A program made the position numbers and the translations under genes. From positions 1 through 45,007 of the forward strand of contig QPMI01000375.1 of the NCBI GenBank assembly GCA_004431415.1: DNA of 45,007 bases, given 5' to 3'. A model generated the notes under the pieces. It made no database searches, was not told the origin of the DNA, and was given only the letters and a program-made list of their open reading frames with translations. The DNA is from Cyanophora paradoxa CCMP329. Its lineage: Eukaryota; Plantae; Glaucophyta. This document shows, piece by piece, positions 4,014 through 41,554 of this stretch. Every line of letters starts with the position of its first letter. Position 1 is the stretch's first letter.

Positions 4014-6578
4014 TCACTCCGGGGGCGGGTGGCCCCTCGCCTGCTGCCAGCTCTGCCGAACGAACGTCAGAGGGGGCGGCGCCGCTTCAGCCGGGCTCGA
4101 GGGCGGGCGGGCGCACGGAGTAGGCGAGGAAGGCGGCGGCGGTCTTCGACCCCACGAAGGAGGCCTCCTTCGAAGGGGGCGAGAGCTCGTCAGGCGGGCG
4201 CGCGGGCGGCCGGGCGGCGGCGGCGCGCGCGCACGAGGCCCTCCCCGACGAAGAGGCGCTCCCCGCGGTCGGCGCCGAGGGCGGCGAGGGCGGCCAGCAG
4301 CTCGCCGTGCACAGCCGTCCCGGCCTCCAGCCAGGCGCTCTCCTTGGGGAGGGCGAGGAGGACGCGCGTCGCGCCCCGCAGCCGCCCCAGCGCCTCCACA
4401 ACCTCCCCTGCCCCCGGCGTCATCGGGGCAGACAAGGGGATGGATTCTGCTAGGGAAGCTAGTGTTTGGCCCTCTTTGGAATGCGGTCTATCCTCTGGCC
4501 CTCGCCCAGCGGCCTGGACGGGGCGGGGCGGAGGGAAGGCCCTCGGGGCCGGGGCGGGGCGCACGCGGGGAGAGGCCCTCGAAGCGGCAGCGGAGCTGGA
4601 GGCGCTGGAGGGTGGCGACGTGCGCCCCGCCCGTGAGCCACGCGAGCTGCCCGGGGCCCAGCCCGTGGTGCGCCACCTCCAGGCTGCCCCGCGCGCCCGC
4701 GTCAGGGGCCGCCCGCGGCGCAGGGCCGGCGCGGCGCACTCGCGCAGGCCGGCGAAGGCGCCCTGGGGCCACGCGGCGGGGAGGCCCACGCGGAGGAGGC
4801 GCAGGCGGGAGCGCCGGGCGGGGCGGGGGCGGAAGAGGCGGCCAGGGCCGGCGGGAGCGCCTCGGGCTCCCCTCGCCCTCCGCGCCCCCGATGACCTCCA
4901 CGTCCTGCGCCGCACCGCATCACCTCGACGCGGATCGAATCTCGCCTCGCGGCGGGGCCGGCGGACGCTGCAGAAGAGCCCGGCGGCGGCGAGGCCCGCG
5001 ACCGCCTCCCCGAGGCGCCGGCAGCCGTTCAGCAGCCTGCGCGCGCGCGCGGCCGCGCCTCAGCGGGGCGGACGCCGAGCGCGAGCGGCGTGCGCGCGGC
5101 CGGCGCACAGGCGGCCGGCGTCGCCGAGGGAGACGCCGGGGGGCCAGGCGGCGGGGAGGGCGCAGCGCTCGACCATGAGGGCCCGACGGTGCCGGCGCCG
5201 AACTCCTCGGGGGCGAAGACGGCGGCCAGGTGCGGGGCGGCGGGGCCGAGCTCCGCGGGGCCTCCCGGGGCGCCCCGGCGAGGCGAGTACGAGGCGGGCG
5301 ACGCGGAGGCCCCGCGCGGCGAGCGCGGCGAGCGCGGCGGCGGCGCGCCCGTCGTACGAGTGCGCCTCGTCGACGCGGCGGAGGGCGGGGAAGGGGGCGA
5401 GGTGCGGCAGCGCCGCCTGCCCCACGCTGATCGCCGCCCCCAGGTGCTCCAGCCCCCGCATCGCAGGCACCTGCCGCCGGCCCAGCTGAGCGGCCGGCGC
5501 CGGGCGGGGCGGGGCGGGGCGTGCGGGGCGCGCACGGGCACGCCCTCGACGAGGACGGCGGGCTTGCCGCTGGAGGCGAGGGAGAGGGAGCGGAGTGCGG
5601 GGAGGTGCCGGTCCACGTCGAGCAGCCGGAAGACCGTCTCAAAGCGCTCCCCGTGCGGGCCTGCCGAGGCTCGGCGGAGGGGCGGGGGGGAGGGGGGCCC
5701 GGGCGGGGCGCACTGGAGGGCCCGTCGTTGTAGATCTCGACCTCGAGGCGGGCCAGCGAGCGCGGGGCGCCCCCCAGCAGCTCCAGCAGCGGCGAGCGGC
5801 GCGGATCGGGGGCGCCCGGGGCCGGCGGGGCGCCCCAGCCGGGGAGGGCGAGCTGGGCGCGCCAGTCGCGCTCCGGGAAGAGGAGCACGAGGCGGAGGCG
5901 CTCGAGGCGCGCGCAGGCCGGCTGCCGCAGCAGCGCCGCCGCCTGCGCCGGCAGCAGCTCCGCGCCCCGCAGCGCCAGCAGCTCCACCACGTGCACCTGC
6001 GCGAGCTCAAGCTCGAGAGATTCGAGGCGGGAGGGACGCGTGCACCTGGGGCTGCCGCAGCTGGACGAGAGGCTCCAGGCGCTGCCGCACGAGCCGCAGG
6101 TCCCGCTCCAGCTGCCGCTCGTACTCGGCCCGCCCGGGGCTCTTGCCGGCCGCGGGCGCGGCCGCCTGCCCGGCGGGGGGGGCTCGCCCGAGCGCCATCT
6201 GCAGCTGCATCTGCAGCATGCGCTGCAGGTCGTCCCCGCCACCGCTCTCCTCCACGGCCAGGCTCACCACAACCCTGAGACGAAGACGGGGATCGGACGG
6301 GCGGCGGCGTCAGGTCACTGAGTCAGCTCGGGCGGCGTGCTGGCGCTCCCTCGCCCCTTCAGGACGCACGCCATCGTCGCGGAAGTCAGAGGCGGCAGCC
6401 TTGCCACCGCCTCGCGCCAGCTGCGTGCGCGGATCGGAGTCGAGTCATGAACTCGGCCCCGGGGGGGGGCGCACCGGCGGCACACGGCGCTCAGGCTGAA
6501 GCGATCCACCAGGCACAGGCGGTCGAGCACGAGGCAAAGAGGGTGCTCGGGGAGCTGGCTCCACTCCGCGTCCCCCAT
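4014..6578 (-). CDS. F-box protein with leucine-rich-repeat-like C-terminal region (multi-exon)
   Basis: The N-terminal MGDAEWSQLPEHPLCLVLDRLCLVDRFSLSAVCR is an F-box motif. Downstream exons carry LRR-like repeats (LESLELE, LERLRLV, LARLEVE, LPALRSLSL, LEHLG, LQRLQLRC). Predicted last exon is SWQQARGHPPPE*. Confidence 0.75.
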
Positions 6579-21206: not shown

Positions 21207-24817
<3,611 letters not shown>

Positions 24818-30606: not shown

Positions 30607-32529
30607 TCAGTCGGGGTGGAAGCGGAGGCACTCCTTGTATATCAGCTCTGCGGGGCGGGGAGGGGAGGATTTGAGGGGGGCGGGGGCCAGCCAGGCGGGC
30701 GGGGCGGGGCGGGGCGGACCCTTGAGGTCCTTCCGCGTCAGCTCGCGGTCCTCGAACTCGAAGGTGAAGATCTGCGAGGCGACGGGCTGCCCGGCGCGCC
30801 CCGTCAGGCGCCGCCGAGCTCGCGCCGGGGCCGCCCCGGCCGGGCGGCCGCACCTCGTCGTTGGGGTCGTGCAGCTCGGCGAGGTACGGGTGCTCCAGCG
30901 CCTCCTCCGCCTGCGCCGCGCCGGCCGGGCGCTGAGGTTGGCCGGCCGGGGACGACGGGGCGGCGCGGGGGCGGGCACGGTGCAGCGCTTCTTGGGGTCG
31001 ACGATGAGCATCTTCTCGAGGAGGTCGATGGCGAGGGGGTTCCCCTTGGGGAAGATCTTGGAGAAGGGGACCCGCGGCCGCTTCGGCAGCGCCTGCAGGT
31101 ACCGCACCGCCTTCTCCGACCCGTTGATCGACTTGAGCTCCTCGTCCGTCGGCGTCCCCAGCACCTTCGTGATCAGCTCCAGCTGGTGGATGTCTGCCGC
31201 CCCGCCCCGCCCCGTCACGCCCGCTCACGCGCGCGCCCCGCCCGTCCAGCGGCGCGGCTGGCGCACAGTCACGACCGGGGAAGAGGGGCTTGCGGCCCAG
31301 CAGCTCAGCGAAGATGCAGCCGACGGACCACATGTCGACTGGGGGAGGGGGGGGGCGGGTCAGGGGACGGGCGGGCGGCGAAGCGCCGGGTCCCGGACGC
31401 ACTGGCTTTGGTGTACTCGCCGCGGAGGATGAGCTCAGGCGCACGGTACCAGCGCGTCACCACGTACTGCGTCATGCCTGCGAGAAAAGAAATCGGCAGA
31501 CACCCAGGGGCCTTCGAAAGAGCTTTCGCACCCTGGTTCTCCTCCTCGGGATCCGACACACGAGCAAGACCAAAGTCGCAGATCTGAGACGCGAACGCGA
31601 TAAGCAGAGGGGCGGGGCGCAAGGCAGGGCCGCCCGGCCGGGGCTGACCTTGAGCTCGCAGTTCTTGTTCACGAGCAGGTTGCCCGGTTTCTGGCGGCGG
31701 GCGAGGAGCGTAAGGAAGGAGTCGAAAAGAACTGCGAGGTGCCAGCGGACGCACAAGGTCGCGGTGGAGGACGTGCGCGGAGTGGATGTACTTGATCGCT
31801 CGGAGGATCTGGTACAGGAAGTACTGGCAGTGGTCGTCCGTCAGCGGCTGTGGGGACTTGATGATCTGGTGCAGATCTGCGTGGCAGCCGTGAGCCCCGA
31901 CTAAACTCCGTTCTCCAGCTCTGCGGCACCTGTGTCCATCAGCTCGACCACAATGTAGACATCCTCGAAGTTCTCCTGGCTCTCAGGCCGCATAACGTCT
32001 TTGAGGGCGATGACCTAACGAGCAAAGTTTCGCACGCGGCCACAAAAACTGAAGGGGTGCACGTACGTTCTCGTGGTTGAGATGGCTGAGTAGCCGGATC
32101 TCGCGCAGCGTACGCTTCGCGTCCGTGGGATCGTCGAAGGCCTTCACAACCTTCTTGATGGCCACATTCTCGCCAGACTTCTCGTCACGCGCAGCACTGC
32201 GTCGCGGGGGGAATCAGTGCCCCGGGCGGCGCGCGATGCAAGCTAGGGCAATCGCTCTGCTATCTACGATCTAGCTCAGTCTCGCCCGCACTAACCAGAC
32301 AACACCTGCGAGAAGCGGGCGTTTCTGTCAGCGCAATTCCTATGGGCCGGCACAGGGGCGGTTCGGACCGTAGGCGCCGTGTCCGAGAGGCTTTACGAGC
32401 GAGTACTTGTCATCCACATCAAACCGGTTGCCCGAGACGACGAAAGAACGCTTTCCCTGCATCCGGTGCCTCTTAGCGCGGCCGGTTGACAGCGCACGAT
32501 CAGGAGGGCGATACGAGGCCGTGCACCAT
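30607..32529 (-). CDS. Mitogen-activated protein kinase (ERK/plant MPK-like) with TQY activation loop (multi-exon)
   Basis: Motifs [67 protein letters not shown] and the CD domain [14 protein letters not shown]. The start is either ATG 32529 (ATG-only first exon) or ATG 32462. Confidence 0.95.
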
Positions 32530-33003
32530 GGCGGGAGAGCGTCCTGAGCCCCGCGAATTCAGGGAGGTTCCTGCTGGTTTCGGGGGTACCGCCGGTTTGA
32601 CCTTGCTCCGATCAAATTCATCTTCCAGTTGAATTGCGCTAACGCCAACAGCACGCTAACGGCGAGCCTGGCGATAACGTCAACGCGTTCAACACCTCGT
32701 TATGCACCTCGCAGGCTGGCACGCTAAGAGGAAAATCCAGCCTGAAAGAGCCCGGCCCAGGACAGGGAAGTTTGATTGAACGCCGAAAAGAGGTCGCAGG
32801 TGTGTGTAAGACGAAGTGCGGAGGAAGGAACGCAGACGACGGAGGGCTCGGCAGCAGCTCTGTTCAGATCGGAAGATACAGGTCCTGTAAACACGGAACT
32901 AACGGAGGAGGGACGGTGGAATGGAAACAGGAAGAGAAAAGAAAAGGAGAGGTGAAGTAGGCGAGGTGGGGCGGGTCCTGGCTAGCTAACGCGAAGAACC
33001 CCC

Positions 33004-33552
33004 CTATTGCGCAGGCGCCTCGCCGACCTGCGAAGCCGACAGTAAGCGATAAGCGCATTAATATAAACGAGTCGAACTGGGCCGCACCTTGGCCTCCAAT
33101 TCCCGAATGCGTGCCATCGCATCGTCCAACTCCTTCTTCATCCTGTCGTTGTCGCTCTTGAGGCCCTCGTACTCGGCTGTCGTGGGAGCACCCAGGTACG
33201 TCTTGATGAAGCTGCAGCGCACGGCTCAGTCAGGTGTGGCGACAAGCTCCAAGGAAGGGAGGGCATACTCAAGAGCATTCGCGGGCTTCTCGGGCTCCTC
33301 GTACAGGGCCACAAAGACTAAAAGGAGAAGATGTGAGCACGAGCTCTGCACACGCTGCAGAGCCGGGCGAGCTAAGCCAGCCGCAGCACCGGCGCACCTT
33401 TGGTCACAGCATCGATGACTCCGCTCCGCTCCAGGTACTTCCGGAACTCGTCCTTCTTCGAGTCGGTGGGTTGCTGCAGCGTGGAGGGTGAGCGGGGACG
33501 CGGTCCGAAAATAAGGTGCAGAGCGCCCGCCGCGACGCACCGGGTAGCTCAT
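33004..33552 (-). CDS. MYCBP: c-Myc-binding protein (MYCBP/AMY-1) homologue (5 exons)
   Basis: Spliced product MSYP..PTDSKKDEFRKYLERSGVIDAVTKVFVALYEEPEKPANALE-FIKTYLGAP...ELEAKVGEAPAQ* matches the MYCBP consensus DSKREQFRRYLEKSGVLDTLTKVLVALYEEPEKP. Confidence 0.92.
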
Positions 33553-33639
33553 CGCTCAGGCTGTGCTGCGTCTGCGGCTCCTGTGCTGTGTCGCGGGGGC
33601 TGAGTCGCTGGTTCGAAATAGTCTAACAAGTTGGGTGGG

Positions 33640-33704
33640 GTACGGCTGAATTCGCCGCGGCAGTCGATTCCCCTGCTTTCCTGTGGTTCCTGAATCCGCG
33701 GCAG
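33640..33704 (+). other. Probable 5'-UTR intron upstream of LAMTOR5
   Basis: gtacgg...ctgaatccgcggcag has the local intron size, a donor, a CTGAN branch-like motif and a CAG acceptor. Confidence 0.4.
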
Positions 33705-33747
33705 CTCCTTCCTGAGATCTGGCTCATAAAGCCCCGATTCCCGATTG

Positions 33748-34035
33748 ATGCAGTCCTCGCTCGATATCGAGGAGGCGCTCGCTCAGGTTCACGTCAGCGA
33801 AGCGAGCGGCGTGGTCGCGGCCGACCGCAGAGGACTCTGCATCGGCTCGACGGGCACCGCGCCCCCTCGCGCGGCGGGGTCCGTTGCGAACATCGCGCGG
33901 ACCGCAGCGAAGCTCGGCTCGCGGGGGTCGAAGGTCGCGGTCTGCATCGAGACGGAGCTCTCGGTCGTGCTCGTATCCGGCTCGCCAGAGTACAGCGTCG
34001 GCATCTTCAACCCGACGCAGCCGGCGCCGGCGTGA
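33748..34035 (+). CDS. LAMTOR5: Ragulator subunit LAMTOR5/HBXIP-like roadblock protein, intronless
   Basis: 95 aa. GVVAADRRGLCIGSTGT...AGSVANIARTAAKL....VAVCIETE parallels LAMTOR5 GVLCTDSQGLNLGCRGT...AGVISVLAQQAAKL....PVVCLESD. Confidence 0.8.
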   Translation: MQSSLDIEEALAQVHVSEASGVVAADRRGLCIGSTGTAPPRAAGSVANIARTAAKLGSRGSKVAVCIETELSVVLVSGSPEYSVGIFNPTQPAPA

Positions 34036-34763
34036 TGTTGTTCGCGGCGCCCGTGTGCGCCCCTTGGCGCGCAGGGGCGCTGCCTGGCCCCGCGCTGGCC
34101 GCGGCGGCCTGTACGGCATGGAGCGCGTGCGGCGGCCGCGCCGCAAAGCCAAAAGCGCTCTACCGCCGCTTCCTCGCCGATGGCCCATCCCACCTCTCCA
34201 CCGCCCCTCAAACCCCCCGCGTTCTGACCGCGCCCGCCGGCTTCCCCCCTCCGCCCTCCGCCCGCGTCTCGGCGGGGCCTCCCGCGCCTCCTCCGCCGCC
34301 GCCCCCCCGGCCTCTCGGCCCGTCGCTCCTGAGGCAGCTGCTCCTCGCGCCGCTCTCGGCCTTGGCGGAGCGGCGGCCGCTGCTCTTCGCCGTGGCCCTC
34401 TTCCTCGTCGCTGGCCTCTGCGAGATCGGCGGCGGGTGGATGGTGTGGAAGGCGGTGCGCGAGGGGGCGCCCCGCTGGTGGGCGGCCCTCGGCAGCCTCG
34501 TCCTCGTCGGCTACGGCTTCATCCCGACCCTCCAGCGCGAGACCTTCGGCCGCACCTACGCCGCCTACGGTGCCCGCCGCCCTCCCCCGCCGCGCGCCCC
34601 GCCCCCGGGCCCCGCCGACGCCGGGGCAGGCGGCTTCTTCATCGTCCTCTCCCTGCTCTGGGGCGCCCTGTTCGACGGCTTCCGCCCCGACCGCTACGAC
34701 CTCCTCGGCTCCCTCATAGCCCTCGCCGGCGTCGCCCTCGTCATGTTCGCCCCCCGCAAGTGA
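34035..34763 (+). CDS. ynfA: YnfA/UPF0060 (SMR/DMT-like) small membrane protein with long N-terminal targeting-like extension; one 60-nt intron at 34570-34629
   Basis: LFLVAGLCEIGGGWMVWKAVREG...FGRTYAAYG|GFFIVLSLLWG..DGFRPDRYDLLGSLIALAGVALVMFAPR is the YnfA consensus. The ATG at 34035 overlaps the LAMTOR5 TGA. Confidence 0.9.
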   Translation: MLFAAPVCAPWRAGALPGPALAAAACTAWSACGGRAAKPKALYRRFLADGPSHLSTAPQTPRVLTAPAGFPPPPSARVSAGPPAPPPPPPPRPLGPSLLRQLLLAPLSALAERRPLLFAVALFLVAGLCEIGGGWMVWKAVREGAPRWWAALGSLVLVGYGFIPTLQRETFGRTYAAYGARRPPPPRAPPPGPADAGAGGFFIVLSLLWGALFDGFRPDRYDLLGSLIALAGVALVMFAPRK

Positions 34764-34775
34764 CTCAGCGCGCCG

Positions 34776-34885
34776 TCAGTTGCCGCCGTCCGCGTTCACG
34801 GCGCCTGCGGGGGCAGGGGATGCGGGGCGGGGTGCGCGGGGGCGGGGCCGAACGCGGCCTGGGCGGCCTGCTGAGCCGCGCGGGA

Positions 34886-34917
<32 letters not shown>

Positions 34918-37900
34918 ACGCGAGGGACGGCTCCTGCGAGGCGGAGGCGGGGCGCGTCCCGCCCCCGCCGCCCCGCCGGGGCGCAGCTCGGAGGCGAGGA
35001 GGGGCACGAGGGCGGGCCGAAGGGACGGGCGCGAAGGGCGCCAGCGACTTGACGGGAGGCCGCCTGCGCGGGCGCGCCGGGTGAGGGGCGGGGCGGGGCC
35101 GAAGGGGGGCGGGGCGGGGGGCACCGGAGAAGAGCTCGGCAAGGAAGGAGGCGCCGTCGGAGCGGGGGCCCAGGCCTGCCCCCGGCACGTGCCTCAGAAG
35201 CGTGCGGCGGGGGGGCGGGGCGGGGACGGGGCGGACCGGCGCGGAGGTCGCCGGGCTCGAGGAGGAAGATGGCGTCGCCCTCGGCGTCCACCGGCTCCTC
35301 CCACACCCGCGCCGCGCCCCCTGCACGCACCCCTCCAGGCCCCGCACGCCGCCCGAGGCCCGGCGCAGCGCGGCGCACCCGAGGGGCCCAGGAGCGTGAG
35401 CCGCACGGTCCCCTTCGGCAGCGCCGGCGCCCCGCTGCACCGCGCCCCGCGCGTCGGGCGAGCCGGCCGGAGGGGCGCGGGTGCACGCGGAGTACGCACC
35501 CGGGGCCGAGGGAGTCGCTGAGGACGCGGACGACGCACGGCACCTGAAAGCGAGTTCGAATCCGCATGGGACCGTTCAATCACCGGCGGGCGCACCTCGC
35601 GCAGCACCAGCATGGCGAGGGACGTGGATTGCTGCGCGCGACGCTTTGAGGGGAGAAAGGGAGGAAAGGGAGCCATCCGGAGTCGAACCCGGGCGACGGT
35701 GGTCTTCGCCGTTGCCAGGCATTGGTCCTTGAGCAGGAGTTCCACGCGCTTGCCCTCCCCCACCGGCACGTCCTGCACCCGGGCTGGAAGCGAGCGGGCA
35801 GCGGAAGGGGGAGAGGGCGGGGGGTACGGCGAAGGTGAAGGGCTCGGCGCCCTCGCGGCGCTTCTCGACGGCCCCCGCCGCGTTCAGCACCTGACAAAAG
35901 GGCTGAGCAGAGGCCTGGCGCCGAAGCGAATGCAGACAACGGTGTACCCGAAGCCAGACGGGGAGGCGCCACGCGACAGCTTCGCTGAACTCCCCGACCT
36001 GCCCCCCGGAGCTCAGGGCGGTACGGAGGCGTGTTGGGGCAGGGCTCGCGCCTGGTACGCGATGCCGACGCGCAGGGAGCCGGCGGGGGGGCGGAGGCCG
36101 CTGCGCGGGGGGCCTCGTCGCGGGCTGCGCGCGTCCGGGGCGGCGGGGAGAAGGGGGCGGGCCTGCCGGGGCGGGAGTTGCTGGGGCGGGAGGCGGTCCC
36201 GTCGGTCCCCGAGATGGAGGCGGCGCCGCTCGGCGAGATCGACACCGTCCCGCTGCGCCGGCCGTCAGGCGGCGCCCCGCGGGGCGGGCGCAGCGGCGGC
36301 CGCGCCTGCCGGAGCGGTCGCGGTGGGCGTGGGGCACGCGGGGCGGCGGGGGGCGGGCCCGGGGCGGCGGGAGGGTGGGAGGGGCCATGGCGAGGGTGGC
36401 GGAGGGGAAGGCGGCGGCGGGGTCGGCCCCGGCCTCGGGGTCCGGCTCCACGACCGCCCCCGGAAGGGCCCCGCCCCCCGGGGCGCACCGGCAGCCGCCC
36501 CCGGCCCCGACCCCCGGCGCCGCCGCCTCCTCCCCGAGGGCCGCGCCTCGGCGCCCTCGCCCGCCTCGGCGAAGGCGTCCACGGCCCGGCGCACCCGCGG
36601 CGCCGCCGCCGGCCGCACCCCGTCCCGCGTCCTGCGCGGCGAGGCGTCGAAGGGCGGGGGCGCGGGGCACGGGAGGGGCACCGGCGGCGGGAGCCGCAGT
36701 AGACGGCGACGCCGAGGGCGAAGAGGAGGCAGACGGCGACGGGGACGACGATGCCGGCGATGAGCGCCACGTTCGGCCCGCCCGGCGCCTCCGCCTGCCG
36801 CCCGAACTGCACCGCTGGCGGGTCCGCCAGCGCCGCGCCGCCCGCGGAGGAGGCCCCGCCGGGCGCCGAGCCGCCGCCGGCGGGGGCGCCCGGGGCGGAG
36901 GTGCCGCCGGCTGACGCGAGGCGTGAGAGGGGGCGGGCCGCAAAGCTTCGCGCGGCCGCACGGGGGAGGAGGCTGGGGGGGACGCCGGGCGCGAGGGACG
37001 AGACGACCAGCGCGTACCGCTGCGGCCGCCTCAGCAGGCGCCCCGGCAGCTAAAGGGTCTCACGGTGCTAGAGCCTTCACGGCGGGCGCGCTGCACGTCT
37101 CGGGGCGCGGGGGCGGGGGCGGGCGGGGCCGGGCCTGGCGGTCGGGGAGGGGCATGCTGGCGCTGGAGACGACCACGGTCACGTTCCCCGCCGCCCCCGC
37201 CACCTCCACCTGCCCCCCGCGCTCAGGGGGAGGGCGGGGCGGGCGGGGGAGGCGGGCGGGCCTGCTCGACGTTGTTGAGCGCGTCCCGCTGCGCGCCGCC
37301 GTTCCCCAGGTGCGCCTCCCCCTCCACGTACACTACCAGGTCCAGGTCGTTCGTCTGCGAGCGCAGCGGTGGGCGGGTGTGCAGCGCGGGGCGGGTTAGG
37401 GCGCACGAGCACGCGGCCCGTCGTGGCGCCGGCGGCCGGGTCCGTCCAGACCTGCCGCACCCGCCGTGAGGGAGGGGACAGGGAGGGGGCTACGACGGCG
37501 GCGAACGAGGGTGGCCTTGATGTTGCGCGGGGAGGAGAGGGGTACGTAGAAAGACGAAATGTAGGGGCCGCCGGTGGGGAAGCCCTGCAGGAAGCGTGAG
37601 GGAAAGGGCGGGAAGTGGCCCCGGTGGGACTCGAACCTGGTCGTCCTTGAGGAGGAGCCAGGAGACGCGGGGCGAGGGGCCCAGGGGCAGGCTCGTGGAA
37701 AGCTGCACGGGCGCCCGGAGCCGCGTGGGCGAGGCGGGGGCGGGAGGGGGCGGGGGCGGGGCGCACGTCGAGGCGGCCGAAGCCCTGCATCTCCCGCGCG
37801 ACGGGCACCTCCTCGAGGCCCCGCAGCGCCTCGGGGCGCGGGTAACCCCTGCCGGCCACGCGTCGCCCCGGCGCGGGGGTCGGGCGGGGTGCGGGCGGCA

Positions 37901-40900
37901 GCGCACTGGAGGCCGGCGAGGGGCCGGGCGCCGTTGATGAGGATCGCCTTGACGAGGGCCGCCGAGGGCCTCCCGAGGGGCCCACCGCCGGCGCCGCTCG
38001 GCCCCTGCCGGGAGCGCTGAGCGGCGGAGCGGCGGGGGCGGGGGCGGCGAGGAGGGGGGGGCGGACTCGCGGAGGAACTGGCGGACGATGGCGGCGGCGG
38101 CGGCGGCGAGCGAGGCCGACACGGAGGTCCCCGAGGACTGCGCCCCCGGGCCCGCCCCTCGCTCCCCCTCCCTCTGCGCGCCGACCGGGCGGGGCGGGGC
38201 GGGGGGTGCGGACGAGGGCGAGGGAGGAGGGGATGCGGGTGCCGTCCGGGAGCAGCAGCGGCCGCCCGCCGCGCACTGCTCCGTCGCCACGTCGTCGTCC
38301 GACATCTGCCGGGGGCGGCGGGTGAGGGGGGCGGGCGGGGCGGGGCGGGGTGGCGGGGCGGGAGGGCGGACGGCGGCGACGACGGACTGGCCGACGGCGA
38401 CGAGGTCCGGCTTCATGCGCCCGTCGAACGTCGGCCCTGCGCGCGTGCGCGTTGGCGAAGTCGAGGAGGGCGGCCCGGGGGCGGGGGCGGGCCCTGCGCG
38501 GAGAAGCCGGCGACGTTCGCCTGGTCGTAGTGCGACGGCTCCTGCCGCGGCACCCTGCGCCCGCCCCGCCCGCCCGCCCGCCCGCTCGCCCCGGCCCCGC
38601 GGCCCCGGCGGGGCGCGGGGGCGGGCACCGCTCGCAGCAGGTGGGGTCCGGCAGCGTCGCCGTCTCGCAGCAGTCGCTCCTCGGGGAGTAGGCCACCGCC
38701 GCCTGCCCCGCGCCCCGTGAGCGCCGGCGGGGCCCGCGGGGCCGCGCGCGGTGCCCGCCTGGAAGCCCTCGTTGGAGGTCTGGCTGGCGCCCACGACGAG
38801 GCAGTTCTTGCACGTCGCCGGCGCCGCTGCCGCCGCCCGCCTCAGGGGGCGTTGGCGGGGGAGGAGGGGCCGGGGCGGGCGCGCCGATGGTCCCCCGCCC
38901 GTTCCACCCGTCGTTCCCCGCCGCCACGACGATCAGCATGTCTGCGCAGCGCGCTCCCAGACCCGTCTGGGCGACGCGAGGAGGGCGCGGCGCGCACCGG
39001 GGTGCTCAAAGGCGAACCGGTCGATTGTGTTCTCGCTGAGGCCTGCGCGGCGGGGCCGCGTGGGCTGCACGATACGGAGAACGCTAGAACAAATCAAAGG
39101 TACCGTAGTAGTTGCAGGAGGGGGTCCCCGTGGCGGTGCGCTTGCAGCCCCTGCCGGGCCGTCAGGGTGGGCACACCAGGAGGGCGCGCAGGGCGGCGGG
39201 CCATGTCACGAGGTGGATGCGGGCGCCGGCGTTGTACTGGGCCTGGGGGTACAGGGCTCAGGTCCGTCGGAGGATACCGGGTGATTCAGAAGGCGCACGA
39301 GGAGAACGCTCTCCTGGAAGGGGTCTGGCAGGCCCGGCATCTGCCCCCCCGTCGGTGGGGAACACAGAGGCGCGGAGTGGTCGAGGGAAGGGTACGCACG
39401 GTGCCCGACGCGTCGCCGTAGTCCGTGAAGACGATCTGGGGGGGCTCGGGGTCGGGAGGGGCGAGAGGACGGGGAGGGGTACGAGGGGCCGCGCCTTGGC
39501 GTCCCGCGCGAGGCCCGAGTACTCCCCCACGCGCGTCAGCGCCGCGGGGTCCGCGACCTGCGCCCGCGTGAGGCCCGGCAGGGGAGGGGGGGGGCGCCTG
39601 CGGGGGGCACCGGGGTGTAGTCGCGGGAGGCGAGGCCGGCGAGGACGCCGACGGAGCGGGTGCCGTGCTCCGAGGGGCCCGAGATCGACGCCCCCGCCGC
39701 CACCAGGTACAGGATCACCTGAGCGCCCGCCTCGCCCGGGGCGCCGGTGGAGGGGGCGGGGCCGGGGGGCTCGCCTTGCGGCGGGCGGGGTTCGGGGCGA
39801 CCTTCGGGGGCACCGTGCTGTCCCGCTCCCGGAACATGCTGCCCGGCCCCGCGCTGAGGCGCCCCGGGGGCCGGGGCGCGGGGCGGGGGCGCGGGGCCGC
39901 GCACCACATGTCGAAGTCGAGGCCGTCGTCCCCCGCCCCCACCACCTCCCCCGCCCCCGCCAGCCCCGCCTCCCAGAAGACAGCAGCCCCCAGCCCGCCC
40001 CCGGGGTCTGCCCCTCGAAGCCTCGGAGAGGGGCGGGCGGGCGGGGTCGGGGGCGGCAGCGGCGGGCGGCGCGGACCGGCGGCCTGGGTGAGGGCGGCGG
40101 CGTAGCGCATGCGGAGGGCCGGTTCCGAGACGGGCTGCACCCAGAGGACCCCCGGGCGGGAGGCGAGGTACCCCAGCGCCGCCCCCCGCGCGTCCGGCGC
40201 CCCCAGGGAGACCCGCACGACGGCGCCGTCTTCGCCGGCGGCCGCGCCGTCGCCGTGGGCGGGGCGCGCGGGGCGCACGGCGGCCGGGAGGCCCGTCAGG
40301 CGCGAGAGGGCGTCTTGCCAGCGAGCCAGCAGCGGCCCGCCGCCTGCCCCCGGGCCGTACTCCGCCCCGCCAAGCGTACGCCCCCAGGCGACCTTCACGG
40401 CCCACTCGGCCGTCGCGTTCGCTCCCCGCGCGAGGGCCTCCGCCCGCGCGTCCCTTTTGTGCCGCTCCTCGAGAATTCCAGCCTGTCCCGCGCCGGCTCA
40501 GCGCGCCCGGCGACCGCCGCCCCTCCCGCGGCTCACCCAGAGCACGCCGGGGACGCCCAGCGCGCGTTCCGCGTCGCGCTCCGTGGCGAGCAGAAGGAAT
40601 GTGTTGTGCGGCACGTAGTCGCCGAGCTGCAGCCCCAGCGCCGCTTCCACCGCGCTGCGAGCCTCCGGGCCCGCGAGGTGCAGCATATAGACGGCGTGAG
40701 GCTCGTCTACGCTGCAGGGGCCGCATGCCACGCCGCGGCTGCCCAGCCGATCCACATCCAAAGCGAGCGACCGAAGAAGGATCTGCGGTCCAGTTCAGCG
40801 CAGCAGCTGCGGCGCTTCCAGCTAGGGGCATGCGCGCCTTTCTGGGGTGCCGTTCGGCGTGCGCGAAGAGCTGCGGCCGGTTCTCGCGCCAGCTCAAAGA

Positions 40901-41002
40901 CGAAGGCGAGGCGCCTGAAACTGGCGCGGCTAGCAGCGCCGACACCGCCAGCGCTACAGCTAGCAACACCAGCGCTTGCGGCAGCCTCTCCGGCGCAGCC
41001 AT
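34776..41002 (-). CDS. Type I membrane S8 subtilase (Kp43/Dictyostelium Tag-like) with Pro-rich cytoplasmic region and C2-like C-terminal domain; many exons, exact stop uncertain (34765-34796)
   Basis: Signal peptide MAAPERLPQALVLLAVALAVSALLAAPVSG and prodomain DYVPHNTFL. Catalytic segments GAGEVVGAGDDGLD (Asp), HGTRSVG (His), VVAAGNDG (oxyanion Asn), GPTFDGRMKPDLVAVG and SGTSVS (Ser). Also PSAALVKAILING, QGFGR, VWTDP, NDLDLVV, NNVEQV and TM VALIAGIVVPVAVCLLFALGVAVYC. Downstream exons continue in frame (GSLRVGIAYQVGEF...). Confidence 0.8.
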
Positions 41003-41554
41003 GCGGATGAACTCCGATCCGGCGCAGTCGAAAGTGGTCTCGGCCGGAGCCGAACCGGTGCCTGCCCAACCTCGCGACTGGTCATGGGCTGCGCGTGCCG
41101 TGTGCAACACCGTGAGCCCATCTTGGCAAGCCCATCCCGTTAGCAGCTGCAGCAACTGCGGCCGGAGCATCTGGTCGCTCAACGGCCGGCACCTGGAGTT
41201 GACTCACGTAGCACTAGCTTACCAATTGCAGAGCTGTTGCGCTAGCGAGGGGCAGCAGACCCGGGCAGTGCACGCGCTACACCGTACTAACACGTAGTGG
41301 CAGGCTGAGCACCGGCAGGCCCGGCAGCAGAGCAGCTCGCAAGTTTTAGCGCTGCGCATACAGGATCCACCACCCACGCGTCAGAGCGAGCGCGCACCGA
41401 GGCCGACCCGCCGGGGCTATAGCTAGCTGCAGCTCGCGCAGCTGCTGCGATAAGGTGGGCGCGCGCTGCACGTGCCTCCTTCTCTGATCCGGCCACATGC
41501 ATGACGCGCGCGCGCGCGGGCGGGCGAGCCAGATCGATCGCCAGGACCGATATC

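Follow-up and report, generated by a model that had tools for sequence, protein, structure and literature searches.

Can a single nuclear messenger RNA of a glaucophyte alga encode two unrelated proteins one after the other, and if so, how would the ribosome reach the second? This question is raised by a stretch of 45,007 nucleotides (nt) of Cyanophora paradoxa CCMP329 (GenBank assembly GCA_004431415.1, contig QPMI01000375.1, positions 1 to 45,007 of the forward strand), called the window below. In the part of the window considered here, an open reading frame (ORF) encoding LAMTOR5, a subunit of the Ragulator complex, is followed by a second ORF encoding a membrane protein of the YnfA/UPF0060 family, and the stop codon of the first overlaps the start codon of the second by a single base. 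The two frames are named ORF1 and ORF2, and their start codons AUG1 and AUG2. An original prediction, made from the letters of the window alone, had taken them for a bicistronic pair bearing signs of leaky scanning. The same explanation is favoured by the analysis reported here and can be regarded as reasonably probable: the locus would be a nuclear bicistronic gene translated by leaky scanning.

The junction between the two frames was read directly from the sequence. In the pentanucleotide UGAUG, the stop codon of ORF1 (TGA, 34033-34035) and the start codon of ORF2 (ATG, 34035-34037) have one base in common, which corresponds to a spacer of -1 nt and places ORF2 in the -1 (+2) frame relative to ORF1. 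The frame of ORF1 is closed upstream by an in-frame TAA at 33727. The start contexts were scored by the general rule for positions -3 and +4 quoted in PMC11892635, not by a species consensus. By this rule the ORF1 start (uugAUGc, U at -3 and C at +4) is weak, and the ORF2 start (gugAUGu), with its G at -3, is better. Its own start codon is the only ATG that ORF1 contains in any frame, and is moreover the only ATG of the forward strand between 33416 and 34034, the nearest one upstream being located at 33415. The AUG codons consequently follow one another along the RNA in the order 33748, 34035, 34118 and 34180, with AUG1 and AUG2 coming first. Both ORFs display the coding bias of the genome, as judged from the GC fraction at third (GC3) and second (GC2) codon positions: 0.875 versus 0.573 in ORF1, and 0.906 versus 0.619 in ORF2. 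This bias gives some indirect backing to the translation of both ORFs. The improved assembly of C. paradoxa has 67.6% GC and a mean intron length of 86 bp (PMC6704402).

On this junction the original prediction proved accurate. Two unrelated, conserved ORFs do lie on one strand, both exceeding the Pfam cut-offs (see below), and the TGATG overlap is present at the positions claimed. No space is left between them for a promoter or a poly(A) site, since they overlap. ORF1 is indeed short and intronless, with 95 uninterrupted codons, and the contrast between a weak first start (uugAUGc) and a second one endowed with G at -3 (gugAUGu) is confirmed.

A third frame of the same strand is also open, over 545 codons (33884-35521), and covers the end of ORF1, the whole of ORF2 and the downstream spacer. 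Within this frame, the AUG at 34118 (ggcAUGg, a strong context) opens 467 codons without any family support, and ribosomes bypassing AUG2 would initiate there. This third open frame is probably a by-product of the local GC content of about 78%.

By Pfam, by sequence search of the PDB and by fold, ORF1 is a real LAMTOR5. Its Pfam match is the LAMTOR5 family PF16672 (E 7.8e-13, 48.8 bits for a cut-off of 27), and a phmmer search against the PDB returned, below an E-value of 0.001, human LAMTOR5/HBXIP chains alone (E 4e-5 to 2e-4). When 1.84 billion representatives were searched exhaustively with HMMER, only 18 relatives were retrieved (E-values from 3e-6, identities of 32-44%); those that bear a functional name are all LAMTOR5 proteins, from a bicosoecid, Capsaspora and bivalves. 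The alignment to the family is full-length, and the invariant residues D26, G29 and G36 are kept. An AlphaFold2 model built on the alignment of these relatives reached a predicted local distance difference test score (pLDDT) of 87.5 and a predicted template modelling score (pTM) of 0.76. When this model was compared with the PDB, ranks 1 to 9 were all occupied by LAMTOR5 chains, with template modelling (TM) scores of 0.71-0.83, the other roadblock proteins scoring lower. ORF1 thus has the same roadblock fold and signature residues as human LAMTOR5/HBXIP, but an identity of just about 25% in structural alignments.

This gene is nevertheless absent from the public protein sets. A word-indexed protein search gave no match, not even to ORF1 itself, which shows that ORF1 is unannotated there. 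The public gene model covers ORF2 alone and starts at AUG2, so that ORF1 falls in what would be its 5' untranslated region (UTR). The presence of a Ragulator subunit in Cyanophora can be explained, since glaucophytes are reported to have kept the Rag and Rheb GTPases, which green algae and plants have lost (PMC9664231). Ragulator itself is patchy among microalgae (PMC9664231).

The assignment of ORF2 is equally direct. Its Pfam match is YnfA/UPF0060 (PF02694, E 1.4e-34) and spans positions 3-106 of the 107-position model. In the unspliced frame, 20 additional residues, which correspond to the intron, interrupt the match precisely at profile positions 64/65. The two exons were searched separately, the public protein P0001 (EukProt tig00001600_g9400.t1, 222 amino acids) standing in for the joined product. 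Once spliced, ORF2 encodes exactly this protein, from which the unspliced frame differs solely by the 20 intron-encoded residues. Compared with YnfA of Escherichia coli (UPF0060, small multidrug resistance family 3), ORF2 covers nearly the whole YnfA model, and differs from the bacterial proteins by an additional targeting extension of about 115 amino acids. Such extensions are shared by its closest relatives, two Coccomyxa proteins of 230 and 237 amino acids with 50-54% identity; the next relatives are shorter YnfA proteins, mostly unnamed and metagenomic.

This extension, in which P, A, L and R are abundant, has 12 K/R for only 2 D/E and begins with MLFAAPVCAP, where F occupies residue 3. 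The transit peptides of the Cyanophora cyanelle are marked by an F within the first ten residues, as in MAFVAPIVAV or MAFIAPCPAI (PMC4510345). The extension fits a predicted cyanelle-type transit peptide, in agreement with the organelle targeting that had been guessed from the sequence. The agreement of MLFAAPVCAP with this phenylalanine rule speaks for targeting to the plastid and, likewise, for an N-terminus that has to be free at AUG2. Just before 34032 the ORF2 frame is closed, and its sole other in-frame ATG, at 34440, falls within the first membrane helix of the conserved domain, which leaves AUG 34035 as the one AUG from which ORF2 could start.

As a separate remark on this gene, the length of its intron is divisible by 3 and the intron is free of stop codons. 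Its retention would add 20 proline-rich residues, in frame, to the middle of the YnfA domain without truncating the protein.

Whether both ORFs are found in the same RNA was investigated with contigs assembled from runs X1, X3 and X8, which come from three independent studies, and from a fourth run, X17, used for comparison. Canonical intron joints are present in the first three and absent from X17, which is unspliced over 32500-34144; X1, X3 and X8 therefore represent RNA, and X17 DNA. The X1 contig (1073 nt, 33653-34568 joined to 34629-34785) and the X3 contig (1067 nt, 33650-34568 joined to 34629-34776) each contain both ORFs complete, together with the junction. In the shallow X8 run, four overlapping or adjacent contigs extend over the locus, one of which, 33905-34126, crosses the junction. 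The ORF2 intron joint (34568/34629, cut +1) is spliced in the three RNA runs, and this intron lies downstream of the ORF1 stop, as had been anticipated. The first exon is an uninterrupted segment of 919 nt; in the two neighbouring genes, exons measure 49-126 nt and introns 52-80 nt. Both of these neighbours are encoded on the minus strand, the upstream one head-to-head and the downstream one tail-to-tail, with its 3' part at or before 34928. Neither end of the RNA can thus be attributed to a neighbour on the same strand. A mature RNA probably carries both ORFs. Of the earlier claim that one mRNA serves both, what stands is that spliced contigs cross the junction in three studies and hold both ORFs whole in two; that the two ORFs share a single molecule is not provable from contigs.

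A second feature of the junction became apparent at the level of RNA folding. An exceptional hairpin, described in Table 1, begins 6 nt past AUG2; with an outer helix (34026-34034 paired with 34091-34099) it forms a 74-nt structure (about -56 kcal/mol) that has the UGAUG at its base. The folding of segment 33960-34100 has a z-score of -3.03, and none of 200 shuffled sequences was equally stable. Equal stability of the hairpin was met in 0.018% of 22,482 windows of 44 nt taken from both strands and in 0.014% of the 7,205 that were GC-matched, and the 74-nt element belongs to the top 0.15% of windows. The coding constraint was evaluated by synonymous recoding of the same 22 codons with the local codon usage: none of 3000 recodings matched the hairpin, their energies being -22.2 ± 3.9 versus -38.9 kcal/mol for the actual hairpin and -38.0 ± 4.4 versus -57.1 kcal/mol for the whole element. 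The 5' leader, for its part, is not unusually structured (z = +0.59), and an Rfam search of the hairpin region gave a chance-level match alone (E 0.73). Since it is so rare among windows, shuffles and synonymous recodings, the hairpin looks selected at the RNA level. It may play a role in the initiation of ORF2. Kozak reportedly found in 1990 that a stable hairpin placed shortly 3' of a suboptimal AUG could make the scanning 40S ribosomal subunit pause there. A stable hairpin is likewise located 3' of the AUG here, at a spacing of 6 nt versus the 14 nt or so reported as best for that effect.

On the basis of these observations, the following scheme can be proposed. One promoter near 33650 would produce one spliced mRNA of about 1.07 kb with two complete and unrelated frames. 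Scanning 40S subunits would meet AUG1 (33748) in a poor context, where some of them would initiate and yield the Ragulator subunit of 95 amino acids. The remaining subunits would travel through 285 nt devoid of any further AUG and initiate at AUG2 (34035, G at -3), giving a YnfA/UPF0060 membrane-protein precursor with a cyanelle transit peptide. The hairpin 6 nt past AUG2 would probably slow the scanning subunit at this point and thereby raise the use of AUG2. A minor share of ORF2 product may stem from termination at the overlapping UGA followed by reinitiation.

A nuclear bicistron with a leaky-scanning layout is already known as a kind. In green algae, exclusively bicistronic nuclear loci have been found in Chlamydomonas, Chromochloris and Auxenochlorella (Gallaher et al. 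2021, PMC7896298; Duenas et al. 2025, PMC11892635), with a weak Kozak-like context at ORF1, a better one at ORF2, a depletion of AUG before ORF2 and a short 5' UTR (PMC11892635; PMC7896298). Mutagenesis in vivo established that the strength of the ORF1 context is inversely related to ORF2 output, which is the behaviour of leaky scanning (PMC11892635). The presence of introns in supposed UTRs was one criterion of their detection; another, applied to Iso-Seq reads, was a single mature mRNA over both ORFs with no monocistronic form (PMC7896298). The small ORF1 proteins of these algae include TOM22, OST4 and PET100 (PMC11892635). The Cyanophora pair is alike in these start contexts, in the lack of further AUGs before ORF2 and in its short 5' leader, as well as in the length of ORF1 (288 nt, versus a median of 291 nt in Auxenochlorella), in the small conserved protein it encodes, in a longer ORF2 located in another frame, and in the intron past the ORF1 stop. 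It differs by its one-base overlap, the green-algal spacers having medians of 40-183 nt, by the hairpin just past AUG2, and by its host, a glaucophyte; the overlap and the hairpin are what is unusual here. The pair is absent from PMC7896298 and PMC11892635, and its transcript is documented by short-read contigs. No report of glaucophyte nuclear bicistrons, of a LAMTOR5 bicistron or of a LAMTOR5-YnfA pair was found in a literature search.

Overlapping stop and start codons also exist in RNA viruses, namely the UAAUG of influenza B segment 7, the termination upstream ribosomal binding site (TURBS) junctions of caliciviruses and the AUGA of victoriviruses. The Cyanophora junction resembles them by its overlap and by a second ORF in another frame. 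Unlike them, it is free of TURBS, belongs to a cellular nuclear gene and has its structure downstream rather than upstream of the junction, and its weak ORF1 start suggests bypass over coupling.

Several points have to be set against leaky scanning on a single messenger. Taken alone, the lack of internal AUGs in ORF1 carries little weight. AUG-free windows of 285 nt represent 19-23% of all those in the 45-kb window and 10.7% of the GC-matched ones, and codon shuffles of ORF1 are AUG-free in 48% of cases. The AUG-depletion signature put forward initially is thus maintained as to the lack of an internal ATG in ORF1, but loses statistical weight by itself, with a chance of 11-23%. A geometric scan of the window for AUG-free ORFs of 45-200 codons, followed within at most 80 nt by an ATG opening at least 80 codons, returned five pairs including LAMTOR5-YnfA. 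The four others (Table 1) have no Pfam family in either ORF and serve as a chance control, not as bicistrons. LAMTOR5-YnfA stands above this chance level because both of its ORFs match curated families and spliced RNA covers both. The case rests on these two family matches, on the obligatory start at AUG2 and on the RNA coverage, not on the signature alone.

The other points concern the RNA, the translation signals and the conservation of the pair. Short-read contigs may merge two overlapping transcripts and cannot prove one molecule, and the depths of the successive X8 contigs climb along 33695-34769 (5.8, 10, 21 and 17, depth within a contig being flat by construction). This rise would fit a 3' bias or an additional, shorter RNA with an internal start covering mainly ORF2. 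The rule used to grade the start codons is a general one and not the Kozak consensus of Cyanophora itself, for which one neighbouring start was read (gcgAUGa). The optimal distance in the experiments of Kozak was reportedly about 14 nt, and the hairpin is nearer here, at 6 nt. The ORF1 stop lies 534 nt upstream of the exon junction, which invites nonsense-mediated decay (NMD) if the exon-junction type operates. The NMD question would be shared with the green-algal bicistrons, in which introns likewise follow ORF1, and is not an objection particular to this locus. Finally, LAMTOR5 was not found near YnfA in two Coccomyxa loci (tblastn of ORF1, best E 0.29), YnfA was not found near LAMTOR5 at two distant LAMTOR5 loci, and a metagenome scan with ORF1 gave no close relative. 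All these comparators of the pairing are distant and non-glaucophyte, and are silent on its conservation within glaucophytes. Its absence from Coccomyxa is even expected, because green algae lack the Rag pathway.

The main mechanistic rival, which could operate alongside leaky scanning, is a bicistronic mRNA on which ORF2 is reached chiefly through termination-reinitiation: after terminating at the UGA, ribosomes would be held by the hairpin and restart at the overlapping AUG. The UGAUG itself speaks for it, and so does an exceptional hairpin placed directly 3' of the junction, where it could stop the post-termination 40S subunit from moving on; a depletion of AUG near the stop would be expected as well (PMC11892635). 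With its 95 codons, however, ORF1 is long for a mechanism whose efficiency drops with ORF length (PMC11892635), and the calicivirus-type TURBS core UGGGA is absent across 33650-34785. The weak context of AUG1 is predicted by leaky scanning but would be pointless under pure reinitiation, and leaky scanning is what the in vivo tests of green-algal bicistrons indicated. Reinitiation as the main route is thus disfavoured and appears unlikely. The same low likelihood is assigned to two overlapping monocistronic transcripts merged by the assembler, a LAMTOR5 mRNA ending in ORF2 and a YnfA mRNA starting in ORF1. This situation is in keeping with contigs that do not resolve single molecules, with the climbing depth of X8 and with the overlapping UTRs reported as common in this genome (PMC6704402). 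It would nevertheless require a promoter located within a coding sequence of 288 nt, and the AUG-free stretch from AUG1 to AUG2 would become a coincidence. Furthermore, X1 and X3 each provide one unbroken contig with nearly identical ends, and among the loose ends listed no poly(A)-like one falls inside ORF2. Spliced-leader or operon-type processing was rejected, as the overlapping ORFs leave neither an acceptor nor a poly(A) site.

Other explanations deny that two separate proteins are produced. ORF1 could have lost its function as a gene and do no more than throttle the translation of YnfA, either as a long upstream ORF with a regulatory role or as a remnant in decay, as its absence from public protein sets and the low identity of its nearest relatives (33-44%) might suggest. 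A full-length LAMTOR5 match with its invariant residues kept, a confident LAMTOR5-like fold (pLDDT 87.5) and a maintained coding bias (GC3 0.875 versus GC2 0.573) are difficult to reconcile with such a fate, and the Rag GTPases, clients of Ragulator, do occur in glaucophytes; this explanation is very improbable. A programmed frameshift fusing LAMTOR5 to YnfA, with the hairpin as stimulator, could likewise be imagined, given the -1 frame of ORF2 and a strong hairpin 6-9 nt downstream, the usual position of a stimulator. The hairpin is however preceded by CCG GCG UGA UGU UGU UC, in which no slippery X XXY YYZ heptamer is found, a +1 shift would enter the third frame and not ORF2, and the fusion would bury a transit peptide whose phenylalanine motif has to be free at the N-terminus. 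With no slippery site and a buried transit peptide, its probability is negligible and the fusion is excluded in practice. Leaky scanning of one bicistronic messenger is consequently retained as the favoured explanation, and the features on which it is based are collected in Table 1.

Table 1. Coordinates of the LAMTOR5-YnfA locus and of the look-alike pairs in the window
Feature	Position	Strand	Description
5' leader	33650-33747	+	95-98 nt, AUG-free, 58% GC; contig starts at 33653 (X1) and 33650 (X3)
ORF1, LAMTOR5 (Ragulator subunit)	33748-34035	+	95 amino acids, 288 nt, intronless; stop UGA 34033-34035
UGAUG stop-start overlap	34033-34037	+	read in the sequence
ORF2, YnfA/UPF0060	34035-34763	+	one 60-nt intron, 222 amino acids; stop 34761-34763
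ORF2 exon 1	34035-34569	+	N-terminal extension of about 115 amino acids and first half of YnfA/UPF0060; PF02694 positions 3-63/64, E 4e-18
RNA hairpin	34044-34083	+	9+8 bp, one G.G mismatch, loop CCUU, -38.9 kcal/mol
ORF2 intron	34570-34629	+	60 nt, GT..AG; from RNA contigs
ORF2 exon 2	34630-34763	+	second half of YnfA/UPF0060; PF02694 positions 65-106, E 3.7e-13
3' tail	34764-34785	+	13-22 nt past the stop; contig ends, not mapped poly(A) sites
Look-alike pairs	4891-5486; 21934-22823; 39908-40615; 39539-41359	+; +; +; -	geometric scan; two with ATGA overlaps

The upstream neighbour (32918-33646, minus strand) is made of five exons separated by introns of 57-80 nt, seen as CT..AC on the plus strand, and starts at 33552 in the context gcgAUGa. 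Its contigs end at 33639-33646, so that only 3-10 nt separate them from the LAMTOR5-YnfA contigs and the two genes are almost without spacer. Its product, a small coiled-coil protein, may resemble the c-Myc-binding protein (MYCBP/AMY-1). On the other side, the short tail-to-tail spacer contains a (GGC)n run (34875-34927 / 34890-34915) at which reads and contigs break, and two contigs have single-G insertions relative to the window, at 35013 and 35021.

If the bicistronic explanation is true, the green-algal type of nuclear bicistron would extend to the third lineage with primary plastids, which bears on its ancient versus recurrent origin. A wider and quite tentative extrapolation is that bicistronic nuclear mRNAs might be regular in glaucophytes, as a trait inherited from the ancestor of Archaeplastida or as one that arises readily where genomes are compact. 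The LAMTOR5-YnfA locus might then represent a sub-type in which a stop-start overlap and a selected hairpin set the number of ORF2 starts, the output of a TOR subunit being inversely coupled to that of a plastid transporter. Small conserved genes would also lie hidden upstream of annotated Cyanophora genes. The absence of LAMTOR5 from the public protein set distorts the presence/absence tables drawn for the TOR-Rag-Ragulator pathway. The association of UGAUG with a hairpin would offer a natural junction in which to study the influence of RNA structure on the way ribosomes are shared out between two ORFs, and would be useful for two-gene expression cassettes in algae.

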